A stretch of DNA of 32,000 nt from Wallemia ichthyophaga EXF-994 (GCF_000400465.1 NW_008806285.1:307017-339016), one strand, 5' to 3'; counted from the stretch's first letter, positions 11,853 to 32,000 are shown. Notes: a model not told the origin generated them from the sequence alone. A program made the numbers and translations.

Positions 11853-12437
11853 ATGGCAAAAACAGCTCTGATTACTGTAGGATCTACGAAGTTCGATGGA
11901 TTGATAAGCCAGGCTGTAGAAATTTCTCAAGCGCTGTCTAAGCAGGGCTATCACAGTCTCGTCATACAGCACGGCAAGTCCAAACTACCGGAAGGGCTGC
12001 CCGGGAGCGTGAAAGAGACATTCGAATATTCTGATAGCTTGAGCAATTACATTGATAACGCTGATATCATCATATCCCATGCAGGTGCGCGCGTAAGCTG
12101 ATAGCATCAATACTATCTGATTACTCAAAGGTACGGGGACGATAATTGAAGTTCTTAGGAGCAAGAAAACGCTTATAGCTGTGCACAACGACAAATTGGC
12201 AGATAATCACCAGCGAGAACTGGCGCGTAGACTGTGCAGGCTGGGATACTGCATCCACAGCAGCGCTGAGTGAGTTTGTGTGTTTTATCAGCAGATAGAG
12301 TTTTAACAATCCTCAGAAATCTCATCGACACTATAAGCTCAATAAATCTGCTTGAATACACACCTACCAGATTTCCAGAATTTGCAGCTGACAGAGTCAG
12401 GCATTTCTTCGACAGCGAGGCGGGATTCCCTGTGTGA
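11853..12437 (+). CDS. ALG13: UDP-N-acetylglucosamine transferase catalytic subunit Alg13
   Basis: [14 protein letters not shown]...[14 protein letters not shown]...[15 protein letters not shown]. Two introns; the stop TGA is at 12435-12437. Confidence 0.9.
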
Positions 12438-12553
12438 TATATCTGGTACCCTATATAAACCCATTTCACTCTCATTGCCTTCAGCCGTCATTCCGGCCAT
12501 TTCGTTGCTTGTACAATCCTTGATCCTGACGTCGACGTCGGTGCGCTGTAAAT

Positions 12554-14181
12554 ATGCAGGTCGTAGATGCGAAGCAGACGGCTTTAAGCAACACAAACGC
12601 CCTCGAGTACACGAGCAAAGAGAAAGCCTTGGAAAGTCTGCTCAGTGCCCCAGTCATCTTCCAAGAAGCCAGCAATCCAGCGAGTAAGGGATTGGGTATA
12701 CCGAATGGCTATAAAGCAGTCAACGAGGAACTTAAGGTAAAACTTCATAACTCTTTTGCGATTTACTCACACATCTCATCTCATAGGCTACACCAAAAGA
12801 AGAACAGCCGTACTCTCCATCCAAAGCCAGTCCTGCCGCATCTGAATCTGCATCTGCATCCAATTCCGCCACGACGAGTGCTGCTGCATCTCCGGCTACT
12901 AAGCCTTCTGCCAAAGATCTCTACCCATGGCCAATCGCACCAGCTTTTCCCAAAGGCATCAACAATGTCGGCAAAGGGTTGAGGAACGTTGGAAACACGT
13001 GTTTCTTGAACAGCACGATGCAGTGCTTACTACACACACCCTCCCTGATGAACTTCCTCCAATCACAGCATGCCAAAGGTAGACCCGACAAGAAGTTCTG
13101 TATGATCGAAGCACTCAAAGCCTGTGCAAAGAGCTCTTTCTCGGGCTCAGGTGGAAGTTATGCTCCAGCACCTGTGGTGAGAAATCTCAAGGCCATCGCC
13201 AAACATATGACAGTCGGTCGACAGGAAGATGCCCAGGAGTTTCTTCGTTATGCCGCAGATGCACTGCAAGCTTCTTATCTCTCAAATTTCCCTAAATCAG
13301 CCAAAGGAAAGCAAGCCGAGACTAACCCAATACATAAAATCTTCGGCGGGAAACTTAGATCGAGAGTTCTGTGTCAGAATTCGAAACACGCTTCGGATAC
13401 ATTTGACACCTTTATGGATTTGAGTGTCAATGTTAAAGGTTGCAGCAACATACAAGAATCTTTCAAATCTTTCACTGCCCTTGACAGACTCGAAGGTGCT
13501 AACAAATACAAATGCGAAAGTTGCAAGAAGCCAGTACCGGCTACAAAGCAATTCACGGTACATGAAGCACCGCAGTGTCTGACGGTGCACCTGAAGAGAT
13601 TCTCACCATTGGGTCAGAAGCTAAACGGTAGTCTTGCTTTCGATGAGAACCTCGACATACAGAAATACATGAGCAAAGGGCAACCATCACCCAAGTACAA
13701 GCTCTACGGTGTCGTGTCCCATTATGGAGGTAGTGCGAGGTCCGGACACTACATCGCGCACGTCAGGGCACCTAATGGAAGATGGTACGAGATGAATGAC
13801 GATATGGTATCGCCCTCGAAACCCCCATTCGGATCTAAGAATGCCTACGTGCTCTTTTACGAGAAAGAAAGAAGTAGCACATTGAAAGATGCTGTCCAAA
13901 GCGCAACATCAGCCACTCCATCAAGTGAAAAGATATTAGGCAAGCGTAAGGTGAATGAAGATGGCTCAGAATCACCTCAGAAGACACCGCTGAAGACGCC
14001 AGTACGCAACAAAATGCAAACCAAGGCACAAACGCCGGTAAGTGCGCCAGCACACAAACCCAGATTAGTATCATTCGATATGCCCTCATCAAACAAAGCA
14101 AAGAAGAGGAGAATGTCTATGCCATTTAACAAACGGGATACACCCTCAGATGATCTTGGATCTCCTGTTGTACGCCGTTGA
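12554..14181 (+). CDS. Ubiquitin C-terminal hydrolase, peptidase C19 (USP36/USP42-like)
   Basis: Cys box GLRNVGNTCFLNSTMQCL, QEDAQEFL, His box GHYIAHV...WYEMND. An intron at ~12737-12786 links ORF 12554 to the catalytic frame. Confidence 0.85.
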
Positions 14182-14222
14182 TTGTATTTTTTTATTTGAT
14201 AGATTATGGGTATTCAACTTGT

Positions 14223-15689
14223 TTAAACTACATGCTTTTCTATTCTAGATGTGTGGCTCGAAGTTGAGGGTGAGTGCTGATCGTTGTCGAACAAGACGTC
14301 CTCCTCCGCAGGGTGTTCTTGAGGACTATCAGAGGTAGATATCCGTGCAGCTTGGTTCGGTTGCTTGTTTGGTGTTTGTGATCGCGAGTGAACAGCAGAG
14401 CTAGCGTGAGATATTGAGCTTGATCTGGATTCAGACTGGGGGAGAAGGTTGTTCAGATGAGCATGGCCATGTCCGTCGGTTGGGCTGCCGAGTTGAGATG
14501 GAAGATCATCCAATGCATACTCGGAATCAGCCGCTGCAGACCAGATACGTCTGTGTCCATTAACAGCACTCCTAGCGCCTGAAAATGGAAGTATCTTTTC
14601 CTTACCGATGTCTGCATTGGTAGGCAGACCGCCCGGATCTCTAAGATGCTCAGGAAGCAAGACGTAGAAGCAAGCAGTTGCTAAACAGGCACCTGCAACT
14701 GCATCGACCAAGTAGTGATGACTGAGGTACATTGTCGCCCAGTACAGCCAACCTACATACGCCCAGTAGAATGCCTTGAATCTAGGGAAGAAGTGCGACA
14801 AGAAAAGCGCCTCTATAGTCGCTGAACCAGCATGCAGAGATGGGAATGCACCAAATACAAGTGGCGATGCACCAAATGCGGAAGAATATGAATGCGAGTG
14901 CATCAGTTCATCGATTCTAGCCAATCCAGCTGGGCTACCAGGAATGGAATAATCAGCTGGAAGCAATCCGTAAAGGAGTTCATACCCTGAGTATTTCATC
15001 AGCAACGGTGCATCGTATCTCAAACTATACCCACAAGGAGGTGCGCAAGGGAAACTGACCTGCACAATAACACCAATGATGTTCATTACACCAAATACGA
15101 AGCCCCAGAACTGCAAGGCGGAGTATGGCTTATGTCCATTTCTGTCAGCGCCGCCTTTGGCAGGTGCGTAGACCCACGCAACGGCGGCAATAACGAAGGG
15201 AACGACGTAGTGAACCAGTCCGTAAGGAAACCACGCGCATATATCCAGTATCCAATGTCTGTGCGTTGTAACCAGATTGCTGATGTTGGCGCCATACCAC
15301 ACTGATTCTAACGTCGGCAGAATAGTAACATTGATTGTAGGTCTTACGGGCGTTGGTATGAAGCGTGCACAGAAAAACGTCATTAACCAACACAATATTG
15401 GCGTACCAGGAAGAAAGAACTGAGAAGTCACCGGAGTGATGATCAACCCGAAGTAAACGACAGGTATCAGCCATTTCACGAGAGGGATAGGAATTGACAT
15501 CATTATAAAGCTCGGGAGCGCAATAAGGAAGTAAATTAACCACTGTATATCAAATTTACGCCATTTGTGTGTTTTGAGCTTCTCTACCGTTACTTTGGGT
15601 GACAAACCATAATCAAGTGATAAAAAGGCTGACTTTATGTCGCGTATTAAATTAGAGACGGGCTTTGGTGCTCTCAGCCCGATACGCAT
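14223..15689 (-). CDS. AUR1: Inositol phosphorylceramide synthase Aur1
   Basis: GAFPSLHAG and MYLSHHYLVD catalytic motifs, PAGLARID and multiple TM segments. Removing a 48-nt intron (15034..14987) restores APPWYE. Confidence 0.9.
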   Translation of the reverse strand: MRIGLRAPKPVSNLIRDIKSAFLSLDYGLSPKVTVEKLKTHKWRKFDIQWLIYFLIALPSFIMMSIPIPLVKWLIPVVYFGLIITPVTSQFFLPGTPILCWLMTFFCARFIPTPVRPTINVTILPTLESVWYGANISNLVTTHRHWILDICAWFPYGLVHYVVPFVIAAVAWVYAPAKGGADRNGHKPYSALQFWGFVFGVMNIIGVIVQVSFPCAPPCGYSLRYDAPLLMKYSGYELLYGLLPADYSIPGSPAGLARIDELMHSHSYSSAFGASPLVFGAFPSLHAGSATIEALFLSHFFPRFKAFYWAYVGWLYWATMYLSHHYLVDAVAGACLATACFYVLLPEHLRDPGGLPTNADIGKEKILPFSGARSAVNGHRRIWSAAADSEYALDDLPSQLGSPTDGHGHAHLNNLLPQSESRSSSISHASSAVHSRSQTPNKQPNQAARISTSDSPQEHPAEEDVLFDNDQHSPSTSSHTSRIEKHVV

Positions 15690-15725
15690 CGTCCTCGTTG
15701 TGGTGGTCGAGTCGTAAGAGTGGAT

Positions 15726-16677
15726 TCATTTTCTTTGAAATGCTATCGTACAAATTGTGCTGCCTTTACTTCCGCCAAAGGAGAATGAAGGATGTTCTAC
15801 GCTGGAATGATACGTAAACCCTGGGAGAGTGTATCGTCAGCTTTGTGCACGGGCTCGGGAAGTCTACTCACTGTCTTGGTTGAGGAAAGTTGATTTTATC
15901 TCTTCCTCCGTGAAGTTACACGATGTAATCAGAAGCTTACCGCCTTTTCGCACCAAGTCCGCGGCGTGCTTGGCATATAAAAGGCGGTTTGAGCCAGTCG
16001 ATAGACAGATAGCGTCTGCATGATTAGATATGCGACTTTTGAACTTGGAATACCTACCAAATGTCCCTTTGTCCATCACGATGTCCCATTCACCTAGCCG
16101 ATTGATCTGCTGTTGATCGAGTACATCTAACACGTCAAACGAGACTGCTTCACAGTCCTTGCCTCTGCTCTTGGCTATGTTGTAAGAAAGCTTAATAGAA
16201 GCAGGACTGTAGTCAACGCCCTTCAAATACTGGCCATCATAGCCGTTGCTAACCAATTCGAACAATAGATGACCGTTGCCGGTTCCCATACTACGAGCAG
16301 GGTTATTTCGTGATGCAGGAGATACCAAAAAGCTTACTCTAGCACACTCGGGCCACTCTCTTCAGGCGTTGCATTATCTAAAGCCCAATCAACCATCTTC
16401 TCGACGCTATCTTCACCGAACCTGGAGACTTGTGAGATGTCTTTCACTAGACATATCACTATTCTAACCATATTTCTCCCTCTTCACCTATCTCTTCAAA
16501 ATTATTGACTTCCCGTCTGAAAGCCCGGTGAGCTCATACGACTGACGCACGCAGACGCAACCTACTCATATACATCATCCCAGCTATGCAAATTGAGTTT
16601 TAAGCGCTGATCAAATATCCCACTCACTGCTCCTTCGTTCCTAGCCTGGACGAAGGTAGATCTTCCACCTGGGCCAT
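15726..16677 (-). CDS. EFM4: Protein-lysine N-methyltransferase Efm4 (EEF1AKMT2-like)
   Basis: Spliced product is MAQVEDLPSSRLGTKEHWDDVYEREVNNFEEIGEEGEIWFGEDSVEKMV...GTGNGHLLFEL...DKGTFDAI...ITSCNFTEEE...FSFGGSKGSTICTIAFQRK*. Several short introns. Confidence 0.85.
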
Positions 16678-16745
16678 GATCGTTTATTATCAAAGGCTTG
16701 TACAGAGTAAGAGCAACTATACATTGGTTTATACATAAAAGCACA

Positions 16746-19083
16746 TCAATCGATTTTATTTTTGGTTGCACGAAGTAGTGCGACATCCTGGAGTAGTGTT
16801 AGAGCAACAGTACGTAACCTACAAACTCACGTAATTCTGGTCCATCTTGTAGTTGGTATACATCTGTACTATTGTGAATTTCGAAGATAAGCATGAAATC
16901 TTCACTCACCCAAGGCACATCATTCTCACCATATTTTTCAACTGGCCTTTTATACGTGAGATACTCATCAGCCAATGCGTTACAGACCTTGTCGTCTCCG
17001 TACAATGGTAGGAACACGCCAAGCTCCCAATTAGTTATACTGAGACTGCCTGTCTTGGTGAATCTTCCCCATGCAGATGGTGTAAAGTTATGCGAGCCAA
17101 CATAAACCCATCCGCCAGCCACATCCTTTTCAGTGACGCGTTCTGTTGTGTCAACTTCGGATTCCGTAGCGCTCGAATCAGTGTCTTCATCGGATGTGAA
17201 TGTCACTTTTTCCTTGCCGTCCTTTGCCTTCTTCAATTTCCCAGCCATCTTGTTTTTAGTAACGGAATGTGTACGCTTTAGAATACCACAAATTGTCTTA
17301 GCATGCATGAAGATATTTCCACGCTTGCTCGGGTTTCTGTGCATTACGTCGCGTGGAAAGTCTGCATTAAGCCACTTTTTGGCACTAATTGTGTCGTTAG
17401 CTTTGGTCGGTGTAATATCACCTCTTACTCCATGAACATGTTGCCTCCCATATCTGGTCCTCCCAAGTTCTCCTGGGCCATCTTTTTGGTAGGGAAAAGA
17501 ATCTTGATAGGAGGCCATTTCTTGCTGTCCTCTTTCTTTTTGCTTTTAAGTGCAAGTGCATCGTCTTGTAATCCTGGTATGAGATTAAAACGACCCGAGG
17601 CTGAGTTGTAGAACTGTCTGATATTAGATTGCGCGACTGCTTACAGCATAACCTACCTCCCTTCCCCAATGAGCTTTGTATGCACCAAGCGAGCTACCTT
17701 GGCACTCTAAGTCAACGAACCATTCATGCTTTGCAGAGTCACCGCGCGCATCAATGAGGTCACCGTTAGCATCAACACCACATCCAGCCCCTCTAATCAG
17801 ATCCGCGAGACGCGCATGTCCGACGCGCTTGATGTTGTCTACGCCTTTGTGCTCCCCGTTTATGCTAGCAACAAGGCGTGCTTTGGATCTTGAGAAGTCC
17901 CACTGACTTATCGCATTAACATTGGGCAATGGAATGTCATCCATTTCAGCAGCCACGCCCGACAGAGTGCTTTGTAGCTGTGAGTATTGACTTAGAAGCA
18001 GAATGCTCCTGCTCACTCATTCAATTTCAGCTTGTAGAGGAACCAACTCCAATCTGTTTCGAATGCCGATGCTTGCTTGCTGCTTGATCCATCTAAAGTA
18101 TTTCCTTTTGGTGGAAAGTCTTGTATAAATAAAGTCTACTACGCGTTAATGAGGGCCATTTGGATTTGTTCAATACCCTACATTTTCATTTAACTTCCAG
18201 TCCATTTCAATGAAGTTTGCAGTTGTCACCAAGACTCTCATCCATCCATCAGTTGTAAATATCTAAATTTAGTGAGATTCGTGTAACACTCTTGCTATGA
18301 CATAACTTACGATAGCGAACTACTTTAACTTAGAGAGGGTTTAAAGTCAAGTTAGGAAGTCTTACCTTCGCATGGTAAGTACCGCGTGCATCTACGTTGT
18401 GCATATACCAATTCCTTCAGATGTCGTCAGATCGAGATAACGGATACCGATCACTTACCTGTTGTTGACAGTTGAAGCGAGTTTGCTCTGCCTTAACATT
18501 AGTTCTAGAAATTATTTTCATAGTAAGGCGTACTGGTTGCGCGCAAATGACTTTTGCGTCGCCAAATAGCGGTATCATTAGCTCATCTTGGCGGACATAG
18601 CTGGACATGATGACCAATTTGAGTCTATTGGGCTAGAATTAAGATGCGTCAATAGATACCACAGCACGAATCGCAGCGTACCTGTCCGAAACACTTGTTG
18701 ATTGACCAAGAATTCTCATTTCTTTCGGTCAGGTAGTTGACAGTTTGCTTTACAACACCGTCGGGATACTTGTCTGCACCGCCAGTATTAGCTTGGGGCT
18801 GTTGCTGAGTAGAATGGTCGCGCTTGACGTGCTTGGCTTGTCGTTCCAGACGTTCAGCCTCAAGCTTCTTCCTCTCCTTTAAGAAATCGAATGGAGCGTT
18901 CTTGGAAGTTAACGTCGATTCTTTTGCCGAATTTGTCGCGTCATCTCCATTAACCATCTCTGGAACCGCAGATGGCTTTATTTGCTTCGGCGGGATGATT
19001 TCATCTGACTCATCTTGTGTACTGCCACGGTTTTCGTCTTCGCTATCTGAAATATTGATAACTTGTGCGCTTCTCTTGGACAT
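16746..19083 (-). CDS. TDP1: Tyrosyl-DNA phosphodiesterase 1 (phospholipase D superfamily)
   Basis: Two HxK motifs: GTYHAK near 18365-18385 and IFMHAK near 17300-17320. Also ECQGSSLG, YVGSHNFTPSAWG and NWELGVFLP. Many introns; the 3' end is inferred through a 15-nt micro-exon. Confidence 0.85.
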
Positions 19084-19143
19084 GGTCGCTACACAGATGA
19101 CCGTGTACTCTTAAGAGATAACGACCAACATCTCGTAGATAGT

Positions 19144-20732
19144 ATGCGGTGGGCATTCAGGGCGAGCAGCCGCCTACTTCAAAGCAGAAACGTGTACAAG
19201 GAAATGCTGGATAGGGGGTTTGTGAAGGATGTTACGAGGTGAGTTTGCGCGCCAGATTGCTGGATGAGTGTCTGACGGGATTAGCGATCTTCTGGGCAGG
19301 CATCTCGAGAGCAGCAGAACAATTTATAGCGGCCTGGATCCTACCGCTGAGTCACTGCATGTCGGACATCTACTGCCTCTGCTCGCCTGCTTGCATCTTC
19401 ATCTAGCAGGACATAGAGTGATTCCACTCGTATGTGCAGTTCACTGCTATTTGCTTCTCGAGCTAATCACGCGTAGATCGGCGGTGCGACTGGCTCAATA
19501 GGAGATCCGTCAGGAAGATCAACAGAACGTTCACTGATTAAGGCAGAGACTCTCGATAAGAACATAGCAACCTTAACAAAACAATTGGGCGTTTTCTACG
19601 AGCGAGGTAGAGAATACGCGCGACATCACGCCCTTTATGACTCTACAATCGGGGAAATAAGTGTCTTAGACAATAAGGAATGGTTAGCGAAGCTCTCTTT
19701 ACTAGAGTTCCTGTCGACTACCGGAAAATTAAGCAACATTGGACCTATGCTGGCTAGAGATTCAGTGAAAAATCGCTTGGCCAAAGGTATCTCGTACACC
19801 GAATTCACTTATCAGCTACTCCAAGCTAGAGACTTTGAGCATCTCTTCACCAGCCACGAATGTACAGTGCAGATTGGTGGTAGCGATCAATGGGGGAACA
19901 TAACCGCTGGCGTTGAATTGATCAGGCGCGTCACCTCAGATGAAACTACTCAAGATAAGGCTTTTGGATTAACATTACCGCTTCTTACAACAAGCAGTGG
20001 TGATAAATTTGGTAAAAGCGCTGGAAATGCTATTTGGTTAAACTCCTCCCTCACTTCTGTCTTTGACTTCTATCAATTTTGGCTCAAGACACCTGATGCG
20101 GATGTGGAGAGGTTCCTCAGGCTGCTCACTCTTGCTCCGTTGAGTGATATTGAGCAACTCATGGAGCAGCATAAAGTAGGTTTTGCACTTTTCTTTTCTA
20201 TCACCTAACGCAAGTGAATTAATTAGGTTGTACCTGAACAAAGATCTGCTCAGCGGCGGCTTGCTGAAGAAGTAACCACTTTGATTCACGGGAGTTAGTC
20301 TGTGAACTAATCAACTACTCACTTCTAACCCTAAAAATAGGAAGTGGACTGGAAATTGCACGCATAGCCACGGGTGTTCTGTTCGGAAAAGACTTGTATG
20401 CACTCAAGACACATCAGGTCGTAGCTGCATTCGAAAATGATTCTCGACTAGTAAGGAAATTACGCAGTGATGTAGTAGGCCAGCGTCTGACACGAGTGTC
20501 AACATTTGGTCGGACTGTAAAATCGACATGTGAGTGACTATTAAGAGTATAATGGAACAACTGACACTTAGTAGCACAAGCCAAAACACTCGTTGCTTCA
20601 GGAGGAGTATACGTCAATGGTGAAAGGATGACAGATGTCAACAGAACACTGACGGAGGAAGATATCATAGACAATCACCTGATCTTCATCAGAACTGGCA
20701 AATCATCGCATTTGATTATACACTTAGACTAA
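19144..20732 (+). CDS. MSY1: Tyrosyl-tRNA synthetase, mitochondrial (bacterial-type)
   Basis: [15 protein letters not shown] (HIGH), [38 protein letters not shown] (KMSKS-like) and an S4-like C-terminus (ASGGVYVNG). The Arg/Ser-rich N-terminus [12 protein letters not shown] resembles a presequence. Several introns. Confidence 0.9.
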
Positions 20733-20782
20733 CATTATCATTATGCATACAAAATAATACAATCAATTTAAGATCATTGTCA

Positions 20783-21856
20783 TTATGGTAGCATCCCACG
20801 CGTGCCCATTTGAAGAGTCTGTAGCAACTTTTTCCACAAACTATCACTCCTAGCTAGTCTTTCTCTGATTGAACGAGCTGCATTAGCATTATCTCGCCGT
20901 CTGTTAGCAAATAAGACTGCCAAGATAAAGATTAACAAAGGTGGTAACACTCTAGGCAGAATTTCTTTCAAAGGGTTTAATAGCATCATGAGCTTTGCTG
21001 TGGTAGTAAGCTGCTTCGGACTGTTTCGAGCCATTGGTTCGATTGGTGGTGTCTTGGCATGCTCAGTCATTTGCGAGCGTATTTCAAGATGCTGAGGTAG
21101 AGTTGCAGAAGTTGTAGGGTTTGCTGCAGGTGACCTTGATGCCACTGTAGCACTATCGGGCTTCCCTCTCGTCTTCAATCTGGCAGGTGTTGCTGTATAC
21201 GATGATCCGTTGGAAGAAGATCTGGATAGACTTGGTGTTGACGGCTCAGTGACTGTAGAGCTTTCTGGTGTGCTTGTGCTTTTCTCCTTGCTCGTTGCTT
21301 CTTGTAAGTCTGCGAGCCGTTGCAGCAATACCTAAATGATGTCAGCTTAATTAGTTCCAGTTTATTTATAACGAACCTCATTTTCTGGTCCACCACTCGA
21401 GGAGGAAAGCAAGAAGTCTCGACTCACTTCCCACTCGCCAAATTCTGGCAGTATGATGAACGCATATACGTCCCTGACTTTGATATAATCCTGATCTGCG
21501 TTGCTAGCACTGTAAAGCCATTCCTCAGCTTCCAGCTTGGCTTTTTCCAATTGATCCAGCCTGATTATAGCGAGCAGAAGCGCCGACTGCGAGCCACCCG
21601 GTAATTGACCGTCTATACGGGAATGAGAAAGACGGATGAGAAAATCGACAAATTGAGAAGTGGTGTATCCAAGCTGAGTGTAATCTGACTTTTTATCATT
21701 ATTCAAGTAGAGCGTAAGCCAACAAGTGAGCTCTAGTGATAGCAGCTTGTTTAATAATCCCGTGCTGTTGGCTCCTGGATAGCAAGCAGCGACGGTGTCC
21801 AAGCATCCAGTGAAATTCTTATTGAGAAGCTGCTTGGATGCTTTGTTGTATGTCAT
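20783..21856 (-). CDS. Tail-anchored membrane protein, possibly peroxin Pex26-like
   Basis: ORFs 21362..21856 and 20783..21328 join through an intron (~21378..21335). It has a helical N-domain with YAFIILPEFGEWEVSRDFL, a Ser/Thr/Pro linker, a C-terminal TM (LLIFILAVLFA) and WKKLLQTLQMGT, which resembles fungal Pex26 from memory. Confidence 0.5.
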
Positions 21857-21897
21857 TCGACTTGTTCTGACTCAACGTCGACGAAGACAACGAAGAG

Positions 21898-24529
21898 ATG
21901 GCCACACCAAGTTTGATTCCATTGGTGGATACAACACCGAGCAAAGATTTGTTGTTAAGCGCCGCAAGAATTACTCCTGTCCTAGTTCCATCTAGCAATC
22001 TCAGCAACACCGTCTCTACCATCCCAAAGTCATCCAGCTACTACGTCTTAGTAGCAGACGATGAGAGCTTAGACAGCGCCATTAGTTACCTCAATAACGG
22101 CGCATCAGCTATCTTCGCTTCTGTCGAATTGGCTGACAGATGTATCTCTGCTGGCGTCCCTTCAGAAAAGCTCTATGCGGTCTCTAGCAGCACTGATATT
22201 CCAGAGGATGTCCTCAAAGGCATCAAAGGTGCCCTTATCAAGATTTCTGGCGTAAATTCAGCCACCCAACTTCCGAAACCAAAGGTTACTCTCTACTTAG
22301 ACGAATCTAAGATTATCCCAACCGAGAAGACAGTTGCTTCCTTACACAAGAGCAATGCTGCGCTTGCGGTGCCACTATCTCAACTCACCAACGACGCCAC
22401 ATCCTCATCCAAGTTGAACATCACAAACGCATTCTTGGCACCAATCACGACCGATAGACCAGATGGTTTGTTCAGCACCATCGTGTCATCCTACCTTCAC
22501 GGTGGAAAGTCATTAGGATTGTGCTATTCATCAAAGGAGTCAATAGAAGAATCCGTCAGAACAGGCAGAGGTGTCTACCAATCTCGCAAACATGGATTAT
22601 GGCGCAAAGGAGAAACAAGTGGTGCTATCCAAGACGTCGTTAAGATCGACCTAGATTGCGACTCTGACTGTCTCAACTTTGAGGTCATTCAACATGGCGC
22701 TGGGTTCTGTCATTTGGACACGCCAACTTGCTTCGGTCAATTGAGCGGCTTAGCTGCTTTGGAAGAGACTCTTGTTTCACGCCACCGATCAGCACCCGAG
22801 GGTAGTTACACTAAGAGACTGTTCAACGATGAAACTCTTCTCAGATCAAAGATTATGGAGGAAGCTGATGAGCTATGTGCTGCAAAATCCCAAGAGGATG
22901 TTGCATTCGAGGCAGCCGATTTGATTTACTTTGCATTAACAAGATGTGTCAGCAAGGGTGTCAATCTCGCAGATATCGGTCATGCATTAGACAAAAAAGC
23001 TGCTAAAGTATCGAGACGACCAGGAAATGCTAAGCCTAAATATCTTGAGCAGGCTCAAGCTAAGATTACCCCAGCTCCTGCACCATCGACCACCCAACAA
23101 CCTCAACCAACATCATTTGGTAACGATTTGATTAGAATGCGCAAGACTAAGCTGGACGGAATTGCCGAAGAGGAGCGCCTGCAGTTGTTGCGTAGACCTG
23201 TATTGAACTCAGGCGCAATGATTGATCGTGTCAGACCAATCGTTGAAGGTGTTAGTACTAAAGGTGACAAGAGCTTGCTTGATTTCATTGCCAAGTTAGA
23301 CAAGGCAGACCTGAAGTCGCCTATTGCACGTGCGCCATTTGAGGAGCCAACAATCCAACAAGATGTCAAGGAAGCAATTGATATCGCTTATGAAAACGTA
23401 CGTAAATTCCATGTTGGTCAAGCAGAGAAGGAGCCTTTAGTCGTTGAAACCATGCCGGGTATCGTTTGTCAAAGGTTCGCTAGACCAATCAGCAGGGTTG
23501 GTCTGTATGTGCCAGGAGGTACAGCAATCTTGCCCTCCTCTGCTCTCATGTTGGGTGTACCAGCGCAAGTAGCAGGATGCAAGGAAATAGTATTGGCAAC
23601 TCCGCCAAAACCTGATGGCAGCATTGCACCAGAAGTACTCTACGTCGCAAAGAAGGTCGGCGCGTCTGCCATTCTCAAAGCAGGAGGTGCACAAGCCGTA
23701 GCAGCTCTCGCTTATGGTACAGAGACAGTGCCAAAGGTTGACAAGATTTTTGGTCCTGGTAATCAATGGGTTACCGCCGCTAAGATGTTCGTATCGACGG
23801 ATGCTGACGCTCAAGTCGCTATTGATATGCCTGCTGGTCCATCGGAAGTACTGGTTATTGCTGACAAGACAGCCAATGCTTCCTACGTTGCCAGTGACCT
23901 TCTTTCACAAGCTGAGCACGGTGTCGACAGTCAAGTTGTGCTGGTGACGATCGATCTCAGTGAGAAGGAGATAGATGACATTGAGAAAGAGGTTGAACAG
24001 CAAGCTAGAAAGCTGCCACGTGTCGATATCACCAGAATTTCGGTATCAAAGAGTTTAATCGTATCAACTAGTGACGTCAAATCCGCATTCGATTTCTCGA
24101 ATGATTACGCTCCTGAGCACCTCATTCTTCATATTGACAGTGCGTCTGAGAAGGTGCCGATGGTCGAAAATGCTGGTAGTGTGTTCGTTGGACAATACTC
24201 TCCAGAGAGGTAAGTGTTCCGGCTATACCTGAAGCCAGCTGACTTCGCTTATAGTTGCGGTGATTATGCATCTGGCACCAACCACACACTTCCAACAAAC
24301 GGGTTTGCTAGACAGTATAGTGGTGAATACAGTCAAATCTCTTATGAATCAGTCTAACACGAAAATAGGTGTAAACACTCTTTCATTCCAAAAGCACATT
24401 ACTTCACAAGAACTTACTAAGGAGGGATTAGATAAATTGGGGCCAGTTGTCGTAAAATTAGCTGAATGTGAAGGATTACGCGCGCACGCCAATGCCGTAC
24501 GAGTAAGACTCGGTATGCAATCACCATAA
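21898..24529 (+). CDS. HIS4: Trifunctional histidine biosynthesis protein (PRA-CH / PRA-PH / histidinol dehydrogenase)
   Basis: [23 protein letters not shown]...FCHL, SYTKRLF...[46 protein letters not shown]. Two introns near the 3' end restore [17 protein letters not shown]...SG-VNT. Confidence 0.95.
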
Positions 24530-24578
24530 ACGCATGCAAGTATCTATGTTATTGTTCAATTCTATATTATAAATGGAT

Positions 24579-25433
24579 TCAAAACTTATGCTCCTCCCCT
24601 ATTAAAAGTTCTAGCTCGTCCATCCGTTGCTCTACAGCCATTTTTGCAACTTTTGTTTGATCCGCCTTATCTTTCAATTTTTGGAGATAGTTCTCGTCTG
24701 GTACTCTATAGAACTTGAATCTCTCCCACCATTTGTGAGTGACTGGTTCTTCAGGTGCCGGTTGAGGTGGTCGTTCGACAATACGCATGTGGTTTTCTTT
24801 GTCTTCTTCTTCTCTGTCTCTCCTTTTCAGCAAATAATTAATCCGCTGCACTCGCACCTCGTTAGCTACTGCTTGGCCCGTCGAACAAACCAAGACTGCT
24901 GTTATCACACCCGGGATAACACCTGCTCTACCGCCTTGAAATTATTAGTTTGCTGTGTATTGTGTGATAATCACCCACGAAGACGATAATTCCAGGCACC
25001 TCCACCAAGTGCACCCGCCAACGCTGAGTCTGCCATCTTGAAAGTCCTTGTCGGTTTATCCTGGTTGACAGGTGCGTACTTGCGTAGCGATGGGGTAACA
25101 AGCCACTCCCTCAAACCTTTGAGATTGTTAAAGGTTTCTGCTGAGTAGTCGCAGACGTACTAAAGAAGACGAAGGACGTGAGAGCGACGTTCTTGGCCGT
25201 ATTGAGACCTCTATCAAGAGCGTTTAGCAACATCGTTAGTCGTGCCTGCTACTCACAAATCCAACCCGTCGATTCCTTTCTGTGAGCCAGTCGCACCAGC
25301 GAGAAGACCTCCTCCGAGTGCTCCACCAAAAATCAGCCAGTGGTCCGATAAGCACATAGATAAACTCACTAAATCCAGCTGTGTTTATAAATATGTTCTG
25401 AGCTGCTTCTGTATCTGCTGGCCAGCTATCCAT
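24579..25433 (-). CDS. Small multi-exon membrane protein, Tim17/Tim22/Tim23-like
   Basis: Spliced over about four introns it gives Gly-rich TM segments: LGGGLLAGATG, AKNVALTSFVFFSLRE, DSALAGALGGG and GRAGVIPGVITAVLVCSTGQ, then a coiled-coil tail. The start (MDSWPAD, 25433) is tentative. Confidence 0.5.
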
Positions 25434-27269
25434 AGTAGACGAAGTATTCTTATCAACGTGGTCAGAGTCAAGGATGTTCTCGTTCAGATTGACTGCTGAA
25501 CGAGAAATAACTTCTTTCTTTTGATTTTAATAAGCGTGAAGCAGCACAAGATATACAGTCATTAGATGTGGATGCTATCAATGAAGTCATTTGCAGCGCG
25601 ATGGATTGACTGTACAGGTTTAAGAGGAAGTTGCAGAAGCGTCAAAATCTTAAATAAATTATGCGTTTGATATAAATTGAAACACCTTAACAATCTTTCA
25701 AAAGCAGCGTCTCAATATGAAGGATTCTGGCTAAGAGAACCACAGGTATGTTGCAGGAAGGGTGATTTGATATCTACAAATATAAATCCTACTCATCATA
25801 ACTCTGCAATTCTAACGCAGCTTTAATCACCCCTCCTTCACATTATTTGAAATTTCGAAGTTAACTAGTCGGAAGCAAAATCCCCGATGTTAGACTTTTG
25901 ATGACCCCCTAATTTCTATACCTAAATATCTTTGAAGTTTGAAGCGAGGCGGAATAGCAATTTTTCTCGGGAGTCAAGTTTGATAGCTGTGGACGCCATG
26001 TGCCGTAAAACGTTTTACGCGTTTAAAGGGTGGTAAATTGTGATTATGGTTCCTTGCGATCTGTAAAAATAAAAATAATGTGCTCCAAACGATGAAGTGC
26101 GTGTGATCCTCATATCTATCCTATGGCGTGCTGCAGAATGATTTCGGACTGTTGCTTCCGAGCAGCGTACAGAGCGTGATTTGAAGCATCAAGGAAATAA
26201 ATCTGGCAAAATCATACTATCTTCCGCCAGAGCTATAAGTTAAGCCTTTTTATTTGGAGATCATAAAAAGTCGTAAATCATCCATTTGGGATGAGATAGG
26301 TGTTAGAGAATGTATGTTGAAGGATATGAGCAAAAGATTGAAATAGTGCTGTATTTGAGATCCTGAAAATGCTATGAAGTGATGTTGTTGCTAAAGTATT
26401 TGAATCGTCAGTAAATGACATCGCTGTGTTTGTCTTCTCACTTAGTGCGTCTTTCGCGGGGAAAATAAGCATATCTGATTCAATTCAATGGTTCAGAGTT
26501 TTGAAAGCGTCTGAAGGAACAAAATGATAATGAAAAGCTATTCAAACCACCCTTACATCCAATAAGAACATTCTGATGTCATTAGAGTTGTAGAGTTGAG
26601 TCCATTTGAGCGATTGTAGGGAGCAACGGAGAATATGGTTGTCAAGATACAACCATACACTGATATATATCTAGACACTTAATAATGTACAAGTTATGTG
26701 TTTCAATCTCCAATACGCATACATTTCATAACACTTTTGTGACTCAGCGGCGGTAAAGAAGTGGCAGTAAGCACTCAATCTGCGCCAAATTCGAGAACAC
26801 TGATGCTCTTCTCTATCTCCGCTTTACCAGTAAATGCTCCAATCGATATGAATCCTCAGTGCCTGTTGAGGTCGCTACTGTAGTTTCAATTCAGATCAAC
26901 GATTCCCAGCGAAATCCGTTTCTGGATATATCTGAAGACTAGCACTCGCTACCATCAGCTCAGCATTGAATTCATATTGTGCATGTGATATGTATCATTT
27001 TCATCTACCAAATACTACATTCATAAGGACATTATATTTACATTTGCTTGATTCCCGGCAATCCGAGCGATGGGAATCCGTAAGCAATCTTCAACTGCTC
27101 TGGCGTCCAGCCAAAGATCTTGCCGTTGCTAACGATTCCGTAGTTTACTCTCGATTGCGTTACGTATAATTTTCGCTATCATGGTCGAGTCACTAATCAT
27201 GTCATCCACCAATAAACTTCTTGGTTGGTTACCATCAAAATTTAACCGAGTTTAATGTTTTAGAGGAGA

Positions 27270-28545
27270 ATGTCAAGCAATCTTTCAAGTTCTCTACTAA
27301 GCTCTCACCTCAGCCGCTCACTCAGGAAGCGTACAATGAACATAATACCTTCGTGGTTCGCTGTAACGATGGGGACTGGGATTCTTTCAATCCTGCTATT
27401 TAACTCACCTTACCAATTCAATGGCCTGCACGTAATAGCCGGCGTGATATTCGCCATTAACATCATCGTATTTGTTGTGTTACTGATATTTACTATACTC
27501 CGATACGCTATTTGGCCATCGCTGCTCCCACTGATGCTCACACACCCCGTCAACCTTTTTTTGGGGACGTTTCCAATGGGATTAGATACGCTGATTACAA
27601 TGATTGTCAACTCTCTAGTCCCCCGATATGGTTACAACTACGTCTTACTAGCCTATGTGCTGTGGTATATCAGCGTTGCCATTTCAATAATCACCTGTAT
27701 AGGTATTCCTTTTATTCAGATGAGCAGGCAGAACGTCGAAAATAGACAGATATTCGCGACTGCACTTCTACCCACCGTCAGTACAATAGTCGCAGCGTCT
27801 ACAGGTGCTTCTGTGGCGACTGTCCTCCCAGACTCACAGGCTAGGATCACTATTGTCATTTCATACATCCTCTTAGGCATGGGACTGCCAATATCCGTAC
27901 TCCTCATGGCTAATTACAGTTACAGACTTATCCTATTCAAGTTACCCCAGCCTGCTTTCATTAGCTCGACCTTTATCACTATAGGGCCATGCGGGCAGTC
28001 TGCATATGCCATCCTCAAGCTGAGCAGCGATGTTAATATGCTTATCTCAAAAACAGGTCTGGTTCCATTCACGGGTGTCAGAGATGAACAAGCTGCGAGA
28101 CTAGCGGGTATTGCGCTACAAACAGTATCCATTCCGATGGCTTTGTTTATCTGGGGATTCGGCGTGCTTTGGTTCTTCTTCGCTGTGATATCCTTCGCTG
28201 ATACATGGGCAGCTAAGAAAATACCTTTGAATCTGTCTCTCTGGGCATGCACGTGGGTGTATCCGTTGTCGAAAAAATCCTTGACTTACCTGTCTCAGCT
28301 TCCCTATCGGCACGCTGGCCTTGTCTGCTCAAGAGCTGGGCAAGGAGATGGACTCAACAGGGATGAAAGTCGTCGGTACTATCCTGATGATGCTCTTGTT
28401 GATAATTTGGCTGCTTCTTTTTCCAGTGACTCTTTACTTCAGCGTCATTAAGGATTCTTGGTTCACTAGCCCGTGTCTGTCGGAAGTCGGTGGCCAGCCG
28501 CCTTCATTTGAGGAGGTTGACTTTATCAAGAACCGCAAGTATTGA
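27270..28545 (+). CDS. SSU1: TDT/SLAC1-family transporter, Ssu1 sulfite-efflux-like, copy 1
   Basis: PSWFAVTMGTGILSILL, LFLGTFPMGLDT, ALLPTVSTIVAASTG, FITIGPCGQ; about 10 TMs. A 46-nt intron (28253-28298) restores WACT-FPIGTLAL and the C-terminus in ORF 28321..28545. The substrate (sulfite versus dicarboxylate) is not provable from sequence. Confidence 0.8.
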
Positions 28546-28658
28546 ACGAATATAGATATGTTTTATAGAATCAAAGCCAGGATGAGATTGTATGATGTAA
28601 TGTATTTAATTTATTTTCCCTAATTTTTTTCACTGTCTTCTTATCGGGTGCTAAGAGG

Positions 28659-28982
28659 ATGGGCAGGAATAAGCTCGATTCTGGCTGGAAAGGACGCCAG
28701 CAGAAGCAGTCTGAGGATTAGAAGCCTAACAATGATCTTAAGGGGGGCTATAAGAAGAACTTTAAGAAGGACAATAAGAATGACTCTAACCACTCAAGTA
28801 AACACGACAGAGGCTACAAAAACCACAGCAAGTCACATAGAAAGTCATCTGTTTCTCATAAACCAGTCACAGATGCAACCGCAAACGGCCAGGGTCAGTT
28901 GCATCCTTCATGAGCAGTCAAGAAAGCACAGGCGGAAACCATAGCAAATGCGCCAACGCGCACCAAAATTACATTCGAATAG
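28659..28982 (+). pseudogene. Decayed coding-like fragment (K/N/D/H-rich) with two internal stops; repeated at 31469..31792
   Basis: The frame from ATG 28659 reads MGRNKLDSGWKGRQQKQSED*KPNNDLKGGYKKNFKKDNKND...QLHPS*AVKKAQAETIANAPTRTKITFE*, with internal TAG at 28719 and TGA at 28911. Confidence 0.35.
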
Positions 28983-28999
28983 ACAAACTATAAATACAT

Positions 29000-29992
29000 T
29001 TAACTTATTGTGCCTGCATGATACGCGGATTTTGTTGTGATTGGAATGCGCATTCGACTAACGCCATCCTCGTCAGCGGGGGGCAAGCGACCACCTCGAA
29101 TATTGAACTGAATAGCAGGATGAAGGAGTTTTGGTGTGTTGAGAGAACTATCTTTCTCCATTCTGAATTGAGCAAAGTGGTCCATCTTGATATGATCATT
29201 GAGAAGCAGCTGATCTGCGACGGTAGTTGAGCAGCTCACCTGCTTACCATCACCTGGATAATCATGACCGACGAAAAGCTTGGTGTCACCAGCCAGACCC
29301 ATCAGCCTATCGATGGAAGACTTCAGCTGGGACGCTACACCGCCTGGAAAATCCGCTCTAGCGGTGTGAGTGGGGGCCAAAAATATGGAGTCGCCGGTGA
29401 AGACGTGTCCTCCGAACATATAACCAACATGGTCAGGCGTATGACCCGGAAGATGGATGACGTTGCCTGAGCAATCACCCAGCGAGATGGTCTCTCCATC
29501 ATCAAGCAGTCCATCGAAGCTACCTTGCAGAGAATCGAGAGAAAGGTTGTATCTTGGTCCGAAAGTGCGCTGCACGTCCACTATCCGCTTCCCAATGCTA
29601 ACGGGTGCGTGGAGGTGGTGCCTCAGGTAACGCGCTGCAGTGAGGTGGTCTGCATGTGCATGTGTCTCCAAAATATGGCGTACTTCTAATTTGCTCGTGG
29701 ATATGTGCGCTAGTAGTCCATCGGCACTCTGCGTACTCACATGCCCACTATTGCTGTCATAATCGAGCACTGGGTCTATCACCGCGGCTTGCAGTGTTCT
29801 AGGACAGTGCAGCACGTACGTCCATGTCGAACTGTCCTTATCGTAGAACGTCTGGGTTGTGGGTGTGTTGGCAGCTACATGCGTACGGAATGGCGGGGTT
29901 GGAGTAACTGCAGCAGTACTTTGATGTCTAATACCACCTTTAATCCCACCAGCTACTTTCCAATTATGATTACGTATAATTTTCGCTATCAT
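29000..29992 (-). CDS. Persulfide (sulfur) dioxygenase-like metallo-beta-lactamase, ETHE1/Blh family, with a putative mitochondrial presequence
   Basis: Intronless. Motifs: STWTYV, AAVIDPVLDYD, ILETHAHADHLTAA (HxHxDH), LPGHTPDH, FTGDSIF, TARADFPGG, LFVGHDY and PKLLHPAIQFNIRGGRLP. In-frame ATGs lie at 30010 and 29992; MIAKIIRNHNWK...IRHQST is basic and has no acidic residues. Confidence 0.85.
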   Translation of the reverse strand: MIAKIIRNHNWKVAGGIKGGIRHQSTAAVTPTPPFRTHVAANTPTTQTFYDKDSSTWTYVLHCPRTLQAAVIDPVLDYDSNSGHVSTQSADGLLAHISTSKLEVRHILETHAHADHLTAARYLRHHLHAPVSIGKRIVDVQRTFGPRYNLSLDSLQGSFDGLLDDGETISLGDCSGNVIHLPGHTPDHVGYMFGGHVFTGDSIFLAPTHTARADFPGGVASQLKSSIDRLMGLAGDTKLFVGHDYPGDGKQVSCSTTVADQLLLNDHIKMDHFAQFRMEKDSSLNTPKLLHPAIQFNIRGGRLPPADEDGVSRMRIPITTKSAYHAGTIS

Positions 29993-30079
29993 GGTCGAGT
30001 CACTAATCATGTCATCCACCAATAAACTTCTTGGTTGGTTACCATCAAAATTTAACCGAGTTTAATGTTTTAGAGGAGA

Positions 30080-31355
30080 ATGTCAAGCAATCTTTCAAGT
30101 TCTCTACTAAGCTCTCACCTCAGCCGCTCACTCAGGAAGCGTACAATGAACATAATACCTTCGTGGTTCGCTGTAACGATGGGGACTGGGATTCTTTCAA
30201 TCCTGCTATTTAACTCACCTTACCAATTCAATGGCCTGCACGTAATAGCCGGCGTGATATTCGCCATTAACATCATCGTATTTGTTGTGTTACTGATATT
30301 TACTATACTCCGATACGCTATTTGGCCATCGCTGCTCCCACTGATGCTCACACACCCCGTCAACCTTTTTTTGGGGACGTTTCCAATGGGATTAGATACG
30401 CTGATTACAATGATTGTCAACTCTCTAGTCCCCCGATATGGTTACAACTACGTCTTACTAGCCTATGTGCTGTGGTATATCAGCGTTGCCATTTCAATAA
30501 TCACCTGTATAGGTATTCCTTTTATTCAGATGAGCAGGCAGAACGTCGAAAATAGACAGATATTCGCGACTGCACTTCTACCCACCGTCAGTACAATAGT
30601 CGCAGCGTCTACAGGTGCTTCTGTGGCGAATGTCCTCCCAGACTCACAGGCTAGGATCACTATTGTCATTTCATACATCCTCTTAGGCATGGGACTGCCA
30701 ATATCCGTACTCCTCATGGCTAATTACAGTTACAGACTTATCCTATTCAAGTTACCCCAGCCTGCTTTCATTAGCTCGACCTTTATCACTATAGGGCCAT
30801 GCGGGCAGTCTGCATATGCCATCCTCAAGCTGAGCAGCGATGTTAATATGCTTATCTCAAAAACAGGTCTGGTTCCATTCACGGGTGTCAGAGATGAACA
30901 AGCTGCGAGACTAGCGGGTATTGCGCTACAAACAGTATCCATTCCGATGGCTTTGTTTATCTGGGGATTCGGCGTGCTTTGGTTCTTCTTCGCTGTGATA
31001 TCCTTCGCTGATACATGGGCAGCTAAGAAAATACCTTTGAATCTGTCTCTCTGGGCATGCACGTGGGTGTATCCGTTGTCGAAAAAATCCTTGACTTACC
31101 TGTCTCAGCTTCCCTATCGGCACGCTGGCCTTGTCTGCTCAAGAGCTGGGCAAGGAGATGGACTCAACAGGGATGAAAGTCGTCGGTACTATCCTGATGA
31201 TGCTCTTGTTGATAATTTGGCTGCTTCTTTTTCCAGTGACTCTTTACTTCAGCGTCATTAAGGATTCTTGGTTCACTAGCCCGTGTCTGTCGGAAGTCGG
31301 TGGCCAGCCGCCTTCATTTGAGGAGGTTGACTTTATCAAGAACCGCAAGTATTGA
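30080..31355 (+). CDS. SSU1: TDT/SLAC1-family transporter, Ssu1-like, copy 2
   Basis: Identical to copy 1 except for Thr->Asn (VATVLP -> VANVLP, A30630). Intron at 31063-31108. Confidence 0.8.
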
Positions 31356-31809
31356 ACGAATATAGATATGTTTTATAGAATCAAAGCCAGGATGAGATTG
31401 TATGATGTAATGTATTTAATTTATTTTCCCTAATTTTTTTCACTGTCTTCTTATCGGGTGCTAAGAGGATGGGCAGGAATAAGCTCGATTCTGGCTGGAA
31501 AGGACGCCAGCAGAAGCAGTCTGAGGATTAGAAGCCTAACAATGATCTTAAGGGGGGCTATAAGAAGAACTTTAAGAAGGACAATAAGAATGACTCTAAC
31601 CACTCAAGTAAACACGACAGAGGCTACAAAAACCACAGCAAGTCACATAGAAAGTCATCTGTTTCTCATAAACCAGTCACAGATGCAACCGCAAACGGCC
31701 AGGGTCAGTTGCATCCTTCATGAGCAGTCAAGAAAGCACAGGCGGAAACCATAGCAAATGCGCCAACGCGCACCAAAATTACATTCGAATAGACAAACTA
31801 TAAATACAT

Positions 31810-32000
31810 TTAACTTATTGTGCCTGCATGATACGCGGATTTTGTTGTGATTGGAATGCGCATTCGACTAACGCCATCCTCGTCAGCGGGGGGCAAGCGA
31901 CCACCTCGAATATTGAACTGAATAGCAGGATGAAGGAGTTTTGGTGTGTTGAGAGAACTATCTTTCTCCATTCTGAATTGAGCAAAGTGGTCCATCTTGA
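31810..32000 (-). CDS. Persulfide dioxygenase-like gene, copy 2 (3' end only; the rest lies beyond the window)
   Basis: Identical to 29000..29190 (…PKLLHPAIQFNIRGGRLPPADEDGVSRMRIPITTKSAYHAGTIS*). Confidence 0.85.
   Translation of the reverse strand, partial: KMDHFAQFRMEKDSSLNTPKLLHPAIQFNIRGGRLPPADEDGVSRMRIPITTKSAYHAGTIS

Follow-up and report, generated by a model that had tools for sequence, protein, structure and literature searches.

The window analysed here, a stretch of 32,000 nt, corresponded at 100% identity to the terminal 32 kb of scaffold KE007235.1 (339,016 bp; GCA_000400465.1) of Wallemia ichthyophaga EXF-994, and its base 32000 was base 339016 of that scaffold, which is the physical scaffold end. 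Its final 5 kb carried a head-to-tail repeat of a gene cassette with an SSU1-like sulfite efflux pump gene, a predicted persulfide dioxygenase gene and a fragment of BUD22, abutting what was left of an aldo-keto reductase (AKR) gene. The features at this end of the window were the following:

up to 27159: unique flank
27038-27160, minus strand: 3' remnant of the AKR gene, comprising the stop and the 40 codons before it; translation TQSRVNYGIVSNGKIFGWTPEQLKIAYGFPSLGLPGIKQM followed by the stop
27160-28647, plus strand: partial cassette unit 1, 1488 bp, from dioxygenase codon 8 to the end of the SSU1 3' region
27160-27182, minus strand: dead dioxygenase stub of the initial 7.7 codons (MIAKIIRN), joined to the AKR remnant in a different frame; the minus strand reads MIAKIIRNAIESKLRNR followed by a stop
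27270-28545, plus strand: SSU1-like sulfite efflux pump copy 1 (T184), exons 27270-28252 and 28299-28545 around a 46-nt GT..AG intron at 28253-28298; 409 aa
28647/28648: blunt unit-unit junction, from the end of the SSU1 3' region (ending in CTTATCGG) to mid-BUD22 (beginning with GTGCTAAG)
28648-31457, plus strand: complete cassette unit 2, 2810 bp, with the BUD22 pseudo-fragment, persulfide dioxygenase, 87-bp intergenic region and SSU1
28648-28982, plus strand: BUD22 3' pseudo-fragment, the last ~110 codons, with two in-frame stops (one in place of Gln, one in place of Trp)
29000-29992, minus strand: predicted type II persulfide (sulfur) dioxygenase of metallo-beta-lactamase fold, intact and intron-less, 330 aa; PF00753
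29993-30079: divergent intergenic region between dioxygenase and SSU1, 87 bp, repeated at 27183-27269
30080-31355, plus strand: SSU1-like sulfite efflux pump copy 2 (N184), exons 30080-31062 and 31109-31355; EOR00443 / P0079
31458-32000, plus strand: partial cassette unit 3, 543 bp, with the BUD22 pseudo-fragment followed by the 3' portion of a second dioxygenase copy, then the scaffold end

Positions 27160-29190 and 29970-32000 were the same at 2030 of 2031 positions, head-to-tail and 2810 bp apart, the sole mismatch being C at 27820 against A at 30630, and left of 27160 the identity between the copies dropped to background (~20%). A match of 2031 nt with a single mismatch cannot be due to chance. 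This base-for-base comparison confirmed the claim of an earlier note on this DNA that near-identical copies of a 2810-bp tandem repeat contain a complete SSU1-like gene, and the description of the remaining window as single-copy was borne out, with no other repeat of at least 40 nt anywhere in the 32 kb. Neither Ns nor tRNA genes nor Rfam matches were found within the window. The period of 2810 bp given in that note was right and its phase wrong, as the unit boundary that it placed at 29969/29970 is contiguous source sequence inside the dioxygenase open reading frame (ORF). The further copies that it thought possible beyond 32000 would lie past an assembly break rather than in unread sequence, position 32000 being the scaffold end. 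With the units drawn as listed above, partial unit 1 equalled 29970-31457 except at 27820, and partial unit 3 was identical to 28648-29190.

The source of the unit was found in other genomes. GDI (minus strand), BUD22 (plus), the dioxygenase gene (minus), SSU1 (plus) and YVC1 (plus) formed a single-copy block in four other W. ichthyophaga assemblies (L001, L006, L008 and L009), and the same block was present in metagenome contigs (L024 and L025), in W. mellicola (L003-L005) and in another Wallemia species (L026, from SRR25399871). The unit aligned to one stretch of this block, from mid-BUD22 to just beyond the SSU1 3' region, and the flanks of that stretch were not in the window. Unit 2 aligned end to end with L001:8470-11277, L006:8110-10926, L008:389-3208 and L009:8107-10925 at 95.1-95.7% identity, and partial unit 1 with L006:9434-10926 and L001:9776-11277. 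The sequences that meet at 28647/28648 were ~2.8 kb apart in the same four assemblies, where their neighbours were YVC1 and upstream BUD22, respectively. By these alignments, a 2.8-kb cassette was evidently copied from the conserved GDI-BUD22-PDO-SSU1-YVC1 locus (PDO, persulfide dioxygenase) and its two ends were joined at 28647/28648.

EXF-994 also possessed its own canonical copy of this locus at one end of scaffold KE007243.1 (L010), where BUD22 and then the dioxygenase gene preceded an SSU1 gene broken off after 59 nt by the scaffold end. This copy was 98.6-99.3% identical to those of other strains and 94.9% identical to the window unit. Since a canonical copy closer to other strains than to the window unit was present in the same genome, the window copies are within-genome paralogs, and neither the canonical locus nor an allele of it. 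A reciprocal translocation between the AKR and BUD22-YVC1 loci was rejected: SSU1 copy 1 ran into the BUD22 fragment and not into YVC1, and the canonical scaffold kept its own dioxygenase-SSU1 adjacency. We observed that the canonical dioxygenase gene of EXF-994 (L010:11540-13040) was a mosaic, with cassette-type tracts equivalent to 29191-29372 and 29558-29874 beside a 10-N gap.

The array met the chromosome at a second, different type of junction, 27159/27160, which led from unique flank to mid-unit, at unit position 1323 of 2810 and within dioxygenase codon 8. The AKR and cassette sequences shared a 2-nt microhomology at the join (TT at 27160-27161). The AKR remnant was the C-terminus of a 316-aa AKR of other strains. 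The left flank (12001-27161) was collinear with eight other-strain loci (L012-L019) at 99.0-99.3% identity and this collinearity stopped at 27161; beyond the equivalent position, the eight loci continued with the remainder of an intact AKR gene and then POP1. The AKR cluster, which came from 17 NCBI contigs of other strains, contained no EXF-994 protein. The assemblies of the other strains were made with EXF-994 as the guide (IDBA-Hybrid); because these EXF-994-guided assemblies still contradicted the EXF-994 structure at this point, the intact AKR gene of the other strains is credible.

Together these observations probably describe, though with considerable room for doubt, an ectopic tandem array that is specific to EXF-994, lies inside its AKR gene and repeats an old accessory cassette. 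As a structural variant it is of a known kind, ectopic tandem gene amplification. In the mechanism that we propose, the two ends of the cassette segment would join to form a circular or multimeric intermediate, which would then integrate by end joining, mid-unit, into the AKR gene via the 2-nt microhomology. Alternatively, the source could first have been duplicated in tandem and more than one unit then captured ectopically, with the same resulting pattern. Insertion by either route would destroy the AKR gene. The unit junction consisted of the joined source ends and the array was circularly permuted at its left chromosomal junction, both of which are expected of a circular intermediate; as the scaffold ends before the right-hand junction, a captured tandem duplication is not separable from such an intermediate.

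Circles in yeast form without flanking repeats and convert to chromosomal tandem arrays (PMC4352087). The XylA/pXI2-6 array of S. cerevisiae (Demeke et al. 2015, PMC4352087) resembles the Wallemia array in that a short non-repetitive segment had its ends joined with little or no homology and formed a head-to-tail array that raised the dosage of a metabolic gene. The yeast array, in contrast, re-formed at the locus it came from, with experimental observation of the circle as well as of the process, whereas the Wallemia array lies at another locus, inside another gene, and is old relative to its source, with a circle suggested by the permuted structure only. Extrachromosomal circular DNA as an intermediate of amplification, which has been documented in yeast, also raises the question of whether the 2810-bp element is, at least in part, a circle; the assembler would then have drawn it as repeated units that touch the AKR gene at a single contact, integrated or chimeric. 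The unit junction, as joined source ends, is exactly a circle junction, the repeat ran off the scaffold end, and near-identity of the copies is expected of a single molecule. Two variants (C and A) were nevertheless present, and the flank junction to the chromosome lay in a gap-free contig. Persistence over a synonymous divergence (dS) of ~0.1 would also need a replication origin and stable inheritance, for neither of which we found evidence; the unit encoded no autonomous-element genes, only the pump, the dioxygenase and the BUD22 fragment. We therefore regard a resident circle as highly unlikely.

The array carried genes that differed from their source far more than the strains differ from each other. 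Between window and canonical copies, dS was 0.10-0.14 for the dioxygenase (ratio of nonsynonymous to synonymous divergence, omega, about 0.15) and 0.09-0.12 for SSU1 (omega 0.03-0.07), against 0.009-0.013 for HIS4 between EXF-994 and other strains. Taken over both cassette genes, omega ranged from 0.03 to 0.16. Genome-wide, single nucleotide polymorphisms (SNPs) between strains were reported at a density of 0.13-0.40% (PMC6738226). In the BUD22 fragment, the window differed from L010 by 20 nonsynonymous and 7 synonymous changes (dS 0.11, omega 0.72) in addition to the two stops; L010 and L001 differed over the same stretch by two nonsynonymous changes only. Judged by these distances, the cassette evidently split from its source at roughly ten times the HIS4 strain divergence, with both genes under purifying selection while the BUD22 piece decayed. 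The earlier note had read the repeat as a very young, in-place dosage amplification. The label 'very young' fits only the likeness of the array copies to one another; an origin that was both young and in place did not survive the 94.9% identity to the canonical copy, dS values of 0.09-0.14 against ~0.01, and the decayed BUD22 piece. We infer that the near-identity of the array copies stems from recent unequal exchange or re-amplification, from concerted evolution, or partly from the assembler. Concerted evolution, or one consensus used more than once by an assembler working at K=21, would account for it just as well as youth.

Of 81 fixed differences between cassette and canonical copies, 59 were GC to AT in the cassette and 12 were AT to GC, and the GC content was 46.4% in the cassette compared to 48.3-48.9% in the canonical copies. 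Polarisation by outgroups was weak, with 12 sites of canonical type and 7 of window type, and both L026 and W. mellicola were too distant (61-70% nucleotide identity). Hypermutation resembling repeat-induced point mutation was rejected as a cause of the divergence: CpA and TCG were not enriched, 13 of the GC to AT changes were transversions, and only a mild 5' G preference was seen. Contamination by another Wallemia species was likewise rejected, as the pump was 99% identical to a W. ichthyophaga protein (P0001), dN between it and the canonical copies was 0.003-0.007, and the next species was at 68-85%.

An insertion that seems ten times older than the divergence of the strains and yet occurs in one of ~22 of them is awkward. 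An old-looking cassette in a single strain could possibly be a relocated old accessory element, an introgression from an unsampled lineage, or the result of mapping or assembly cross-talk. As a more far-reaching version of the first of these, the cassette may be a long-lived accessory element of the W. ichthyophaga pool, or of an unsampled sister lineage, that amplifies and relocates by itself, persists via circles, moves from site to site or strain to strain, and exchanges sequence with its canonical counterpart. Such an element would explain its age versus its presence in one strain, the polymorphic canonical locus and the cassette-type tracts found there, and we give it a slim chance of being correct. 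Regarding that polymorphism, the canonical locus differed by 0.5-2% among strains L001, L006, L008 and L009 (dS up to 0.06), several-fold more than HIS4, and some strains shared brief stretches with cassette-type alleles, as L009 did at the equivalents of 29132-29191 and 29501-29534. BUD22 at the canonical locus had a 12-nt in-frame indel polymorphism. Single-locus reads of other strains will mis-map between the paralogs, and the apparent diversity there may be inflated.

Besides the awkward age, several properties of the assembly and of the searches weigh against an ectopic array in the AKR gene. The EXF-994 genome is a 2013 assembly of Illumina libraries of 500 bp and 2 kb, made in SOAPdenovo 1.04 with K=21 (PMC3849046), and the array lies at the very end of one of its short-read scaffolds. 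No unitig can run twice through a repeat of 2.8 kb; the layout of 1.7 units therefore stems from scaffolding or gap filling, and both the copy number and the 'one SNP' between the copies are unreliable. At the other scaffold end, the mosaic and 10-N gap of the canonical copy mean that the paralogs were mixed, either through gene conversion between them or by the assembler through bubble popping at K=21. The right-hand junction from the cassette to the rest of the AKR gene was not found among the members of the AKR cluster and Logan contigs, all of which were intact-AKR haplotypes. The flank junction and the exact window-type dioxygenase were in no other assembly or Logan contig searched, and thus had no independent confirmation; a look-up of the exact dioxygenase protein returned EXF-994 only, and the short Logan contigs with SSU1 were canonical loci. 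Furthermore, the enzymatic and transport roles of the cassette genes are predictions from homology.

These properties would be accounted for if the diverged cassette were real and its position or copy number were an artefact, so that the tandem lies at the BUD22-YVC1 locus or elsewhere, or has another number of copies, while SOAPdenovo scaffolding and gap closing produced both the layout of 1.7 units and the link to the HIS4/AKR flank. The position at a scaffold end, the K=21 assembly from short libraries, and a canonical locus that also ends its scaffold, 59 nt into SSU1 and with a 10-N gap and window-type tracts, are consistent with this, as is a flank junction seen in no other strain; a tandem duplication at the source locus alone would make the junction at 28647/28648. 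However, the flank and cassette share only 2 nt at their join, so a path through a K=21 graph needs real reads that span it, and the window has no Ns. The absence of the AKR protein from the EXF-994 annotation is expected of a disrupted gene, and tandem copies at a single locus would not normally be 5% away from the first copy and 99.95% alike among themselves. We consider misplacement or miscounting by the assembler unlikely, although it is a contender to be taken seriously. If the span across 29969/29970, the flank junction and the C and A variants reflect reads, at least two window-type SSU1 copies are required.

The spliced reading frame of the pump genes in the array was open, and the product belonged to the TDT/SLAC1 family (PF03595, 6.5e-65, residues 26-328 of the unspliced ORF; Pfam). 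TIGR00816 scored 128.8 bits, under its cut-off of 237 (NCBIfam). The spliced protein was 99% identical to W. ichthyophaga proteins source-named 'Sulfite efflux pump SSU1', and many fungal homologs at 36-45% identity carry SSU1 as their source name. The PF03595/TDT family takes in malate and tellurite transporters as well, and from the names of its homologs we infer that the substrate of the pump is sulfite. The single difference between the copies (27820/30630) was nonsynonymous, with the ancestral C giving Thr184 in copy 1 and the derived A giving Asn184 in copy 2; C was found in all four strain copies that cover the equivalent of 30630, and residue 184 varies freely across the family. The deposited 259-aa models EOR00441 (27720-28545) and EOR00443 (30530-31355) begin at an internal Met and miss 150 codons. 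The full ORF starts with the ATG at 27270 / 30080, 450 nt upstream of the deposited start, and the models of other strains and W. mellicola have 387-401 aa.

The partner of the pump is a putative type II persulfide dioxygenase that would form sulfite, as suggested by its homologs. Its matches among PDB structures were 9g8t (6.4e-66), 4ysk (2.6e-60), which we take to be a bacterial PDO structure, the PDB name itself being generic, 4efz (5.4e-59) and human ETHE1 (4chl, 5.9e-14), compared with only 1e-9 to 1e-15 for glyoxalase II and ~1e-3 to 1e-5 for beta-lactamases. It also matched the dioxygenase domain of Blh, a bifunctional sulfurtransferase/dioxygenase (1.2e-81; NCBIfam), and missed the cut-off for whole Blh proteins because it lacks the sulfurtransferase domain. 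The motifs HAHADH at 111, GHTPDH at 183 and TGDSIF at 199 supply the HxHxDH signature and the downstream His/Asp ligands. The first 43 residues were basic and free of acidic residues, and with this putative N-terminal presequence the enzyme is probably mitochondrial. Like type II persulfide dioxygenases and ETHE1, the Wallemia protein has full-length similarity to this group (E 1e-60 to 1e-66), conserved metal-binding motifs and sulfite as the expected product; unlike the bacterial PDO and ETHE1 proteins, it is fungal, has an N-terminal extension and is fixed head-to-head with a sulfite exporter, its activity being a prediction. In dermatophytes and Candida, cysteine dioxygenase and SSU1 likewise couple a sulfite-generating enzyme to SSU1-mediated export, although that enzyme is of another family with another substrate, and the genes are co-regulated and not known to be physically paired or co-amplified. 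The head-to-head dioxygenase/SSU1 pair flanked by BUD22 and YVC1 was conserved in at least three Wallemia species. We found no description of such a pairing in the literature, and no mention there of SSU1 in W. ichthyophaga.

Going by the homologs, the dioxygenase would oxidise glutathione persulfide to sulfite, which SSU1 would export. The most economical interpretation of extra cassettes is that they would raise the capacity of this route for disposing of sulfide and persulfide as exported sulfite. The earlier note had instead suggested, as a speculation, that sulfite used as a food preservative selected the amplification, by analogy with SSU1 in wine yeast. Its proviso of a food-associated xerophile was apt, W. 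ichthyophaga being a halophile of salterns and salted food, and a very recent amplification of SSU1 dosage in place, selected by exogenous sulfite, would fit the difference at only 1 of 2031 positions between the copies. In yeasts, SSU1-type pumps give sulfite tolerance and SSU1 rearrangements are adaptive (PMC7336578, PMC8631656). In wine Saccharomyces, these rearrangements (the VIII-XVI and XV-XVI translocations, the XVI inversion and their S. uvarum equivalents; PMC7336578, PMC8631656) resemble the Wallemia array as structural changes at an SSU1-family exporter that plausibly give more output. They differ in that the promoter was replaced and a single gene copy kept, whereas the Wallemia array has the native 87-bp intergenic region, more genes and a co-amplified dioxygenase. 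No copy had a foreign promoter upstream of SSU1, and copy 1 retained 110 nt of native upstream sequence, so the analogy fails in its mechanism. Preservative selection is also hard to reconcile with a cassette that is foreign to its site, ~5% away from its source and accompanied by a decayed BUD22 fragment. EXF-994 shares its place of origin, a hypersaline saltern, with strains 7 and 8, and the food strains examined had single-copy canonical loci and an intact AKR gene. Moreover, a pump paired and co-amplified with a persulfide dioxygenase, an enzyme expected to make sulfite, would sooner export sulfite of endogenous origin than reflect selection by a preservative, and the array is not known to be linked to added sulfite. 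We therefore hold a recent in-place amplification selected by added sulfite to be very improbable.

At least one array copy is transcribed and has been reported as induced at 30% NaCl. The N184 copy (GME4544_g) was up-regulated at 30% versus 10% NaCl with a log2 ratio of 2.16 (RPKM, reads per kilobase per million, 1.65 to 7.40; Table S6, Zajc et al. 2013). Expression was low, at 17 versus 78 reads at 10% and 30% NaCl, and such reads cannot tell the near-identical copies apart. Neither the T184 copy nor the dioxygenase was listed there among the genes with differential expression (Zajc et al. 2013). The W. ichthyophaga genome has been described as very small and compact, with hardly any duplications (PMC6738226, PMC3849046). 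With the array in place, the type strain would hold at least three sulfite-pump and at least two persulfide dioxygenase genes and lack an AKR that other strains have, and this structural difference sits in the reference genome used for mapping in all population work. The reference is unreliable here, with a scaffold end, cut-down SSU1 gene models and a mosaic canonical locus. The conserved pair suggests a route dedicated to turning sulfide or persulfide into exported sulfite, of possible importance in the sulfidic brines of salterns.

Two observations concern the flank. The HIS4 protein of EXF-994 (21898-24529) was set apart from that of every other strain by 6-11 residues across the ORF compared, leaving out the ORF-end position; 9 of ~15 nucleotide differences were nonsynonymous, and this haplotype was in no other assembly or Logan contig. 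A gene annotated with 214 aa adjoins the junction; its annotated length could not be reproduced with any choice of one or two GT-AG introns, so HIS4 and the AKR gene served for the comparison with other strains instead. Between HIS4 and the AKR remnant, in a genome that is ~72% coding, 25358-27037 formed an unusual ~1.7-kb stretch without an ORF of at least 70 aa, a tRNA gene or an Rfam match; its GC content was ~39% at 26001-27000, and it was present in other strains at ~98% identity.

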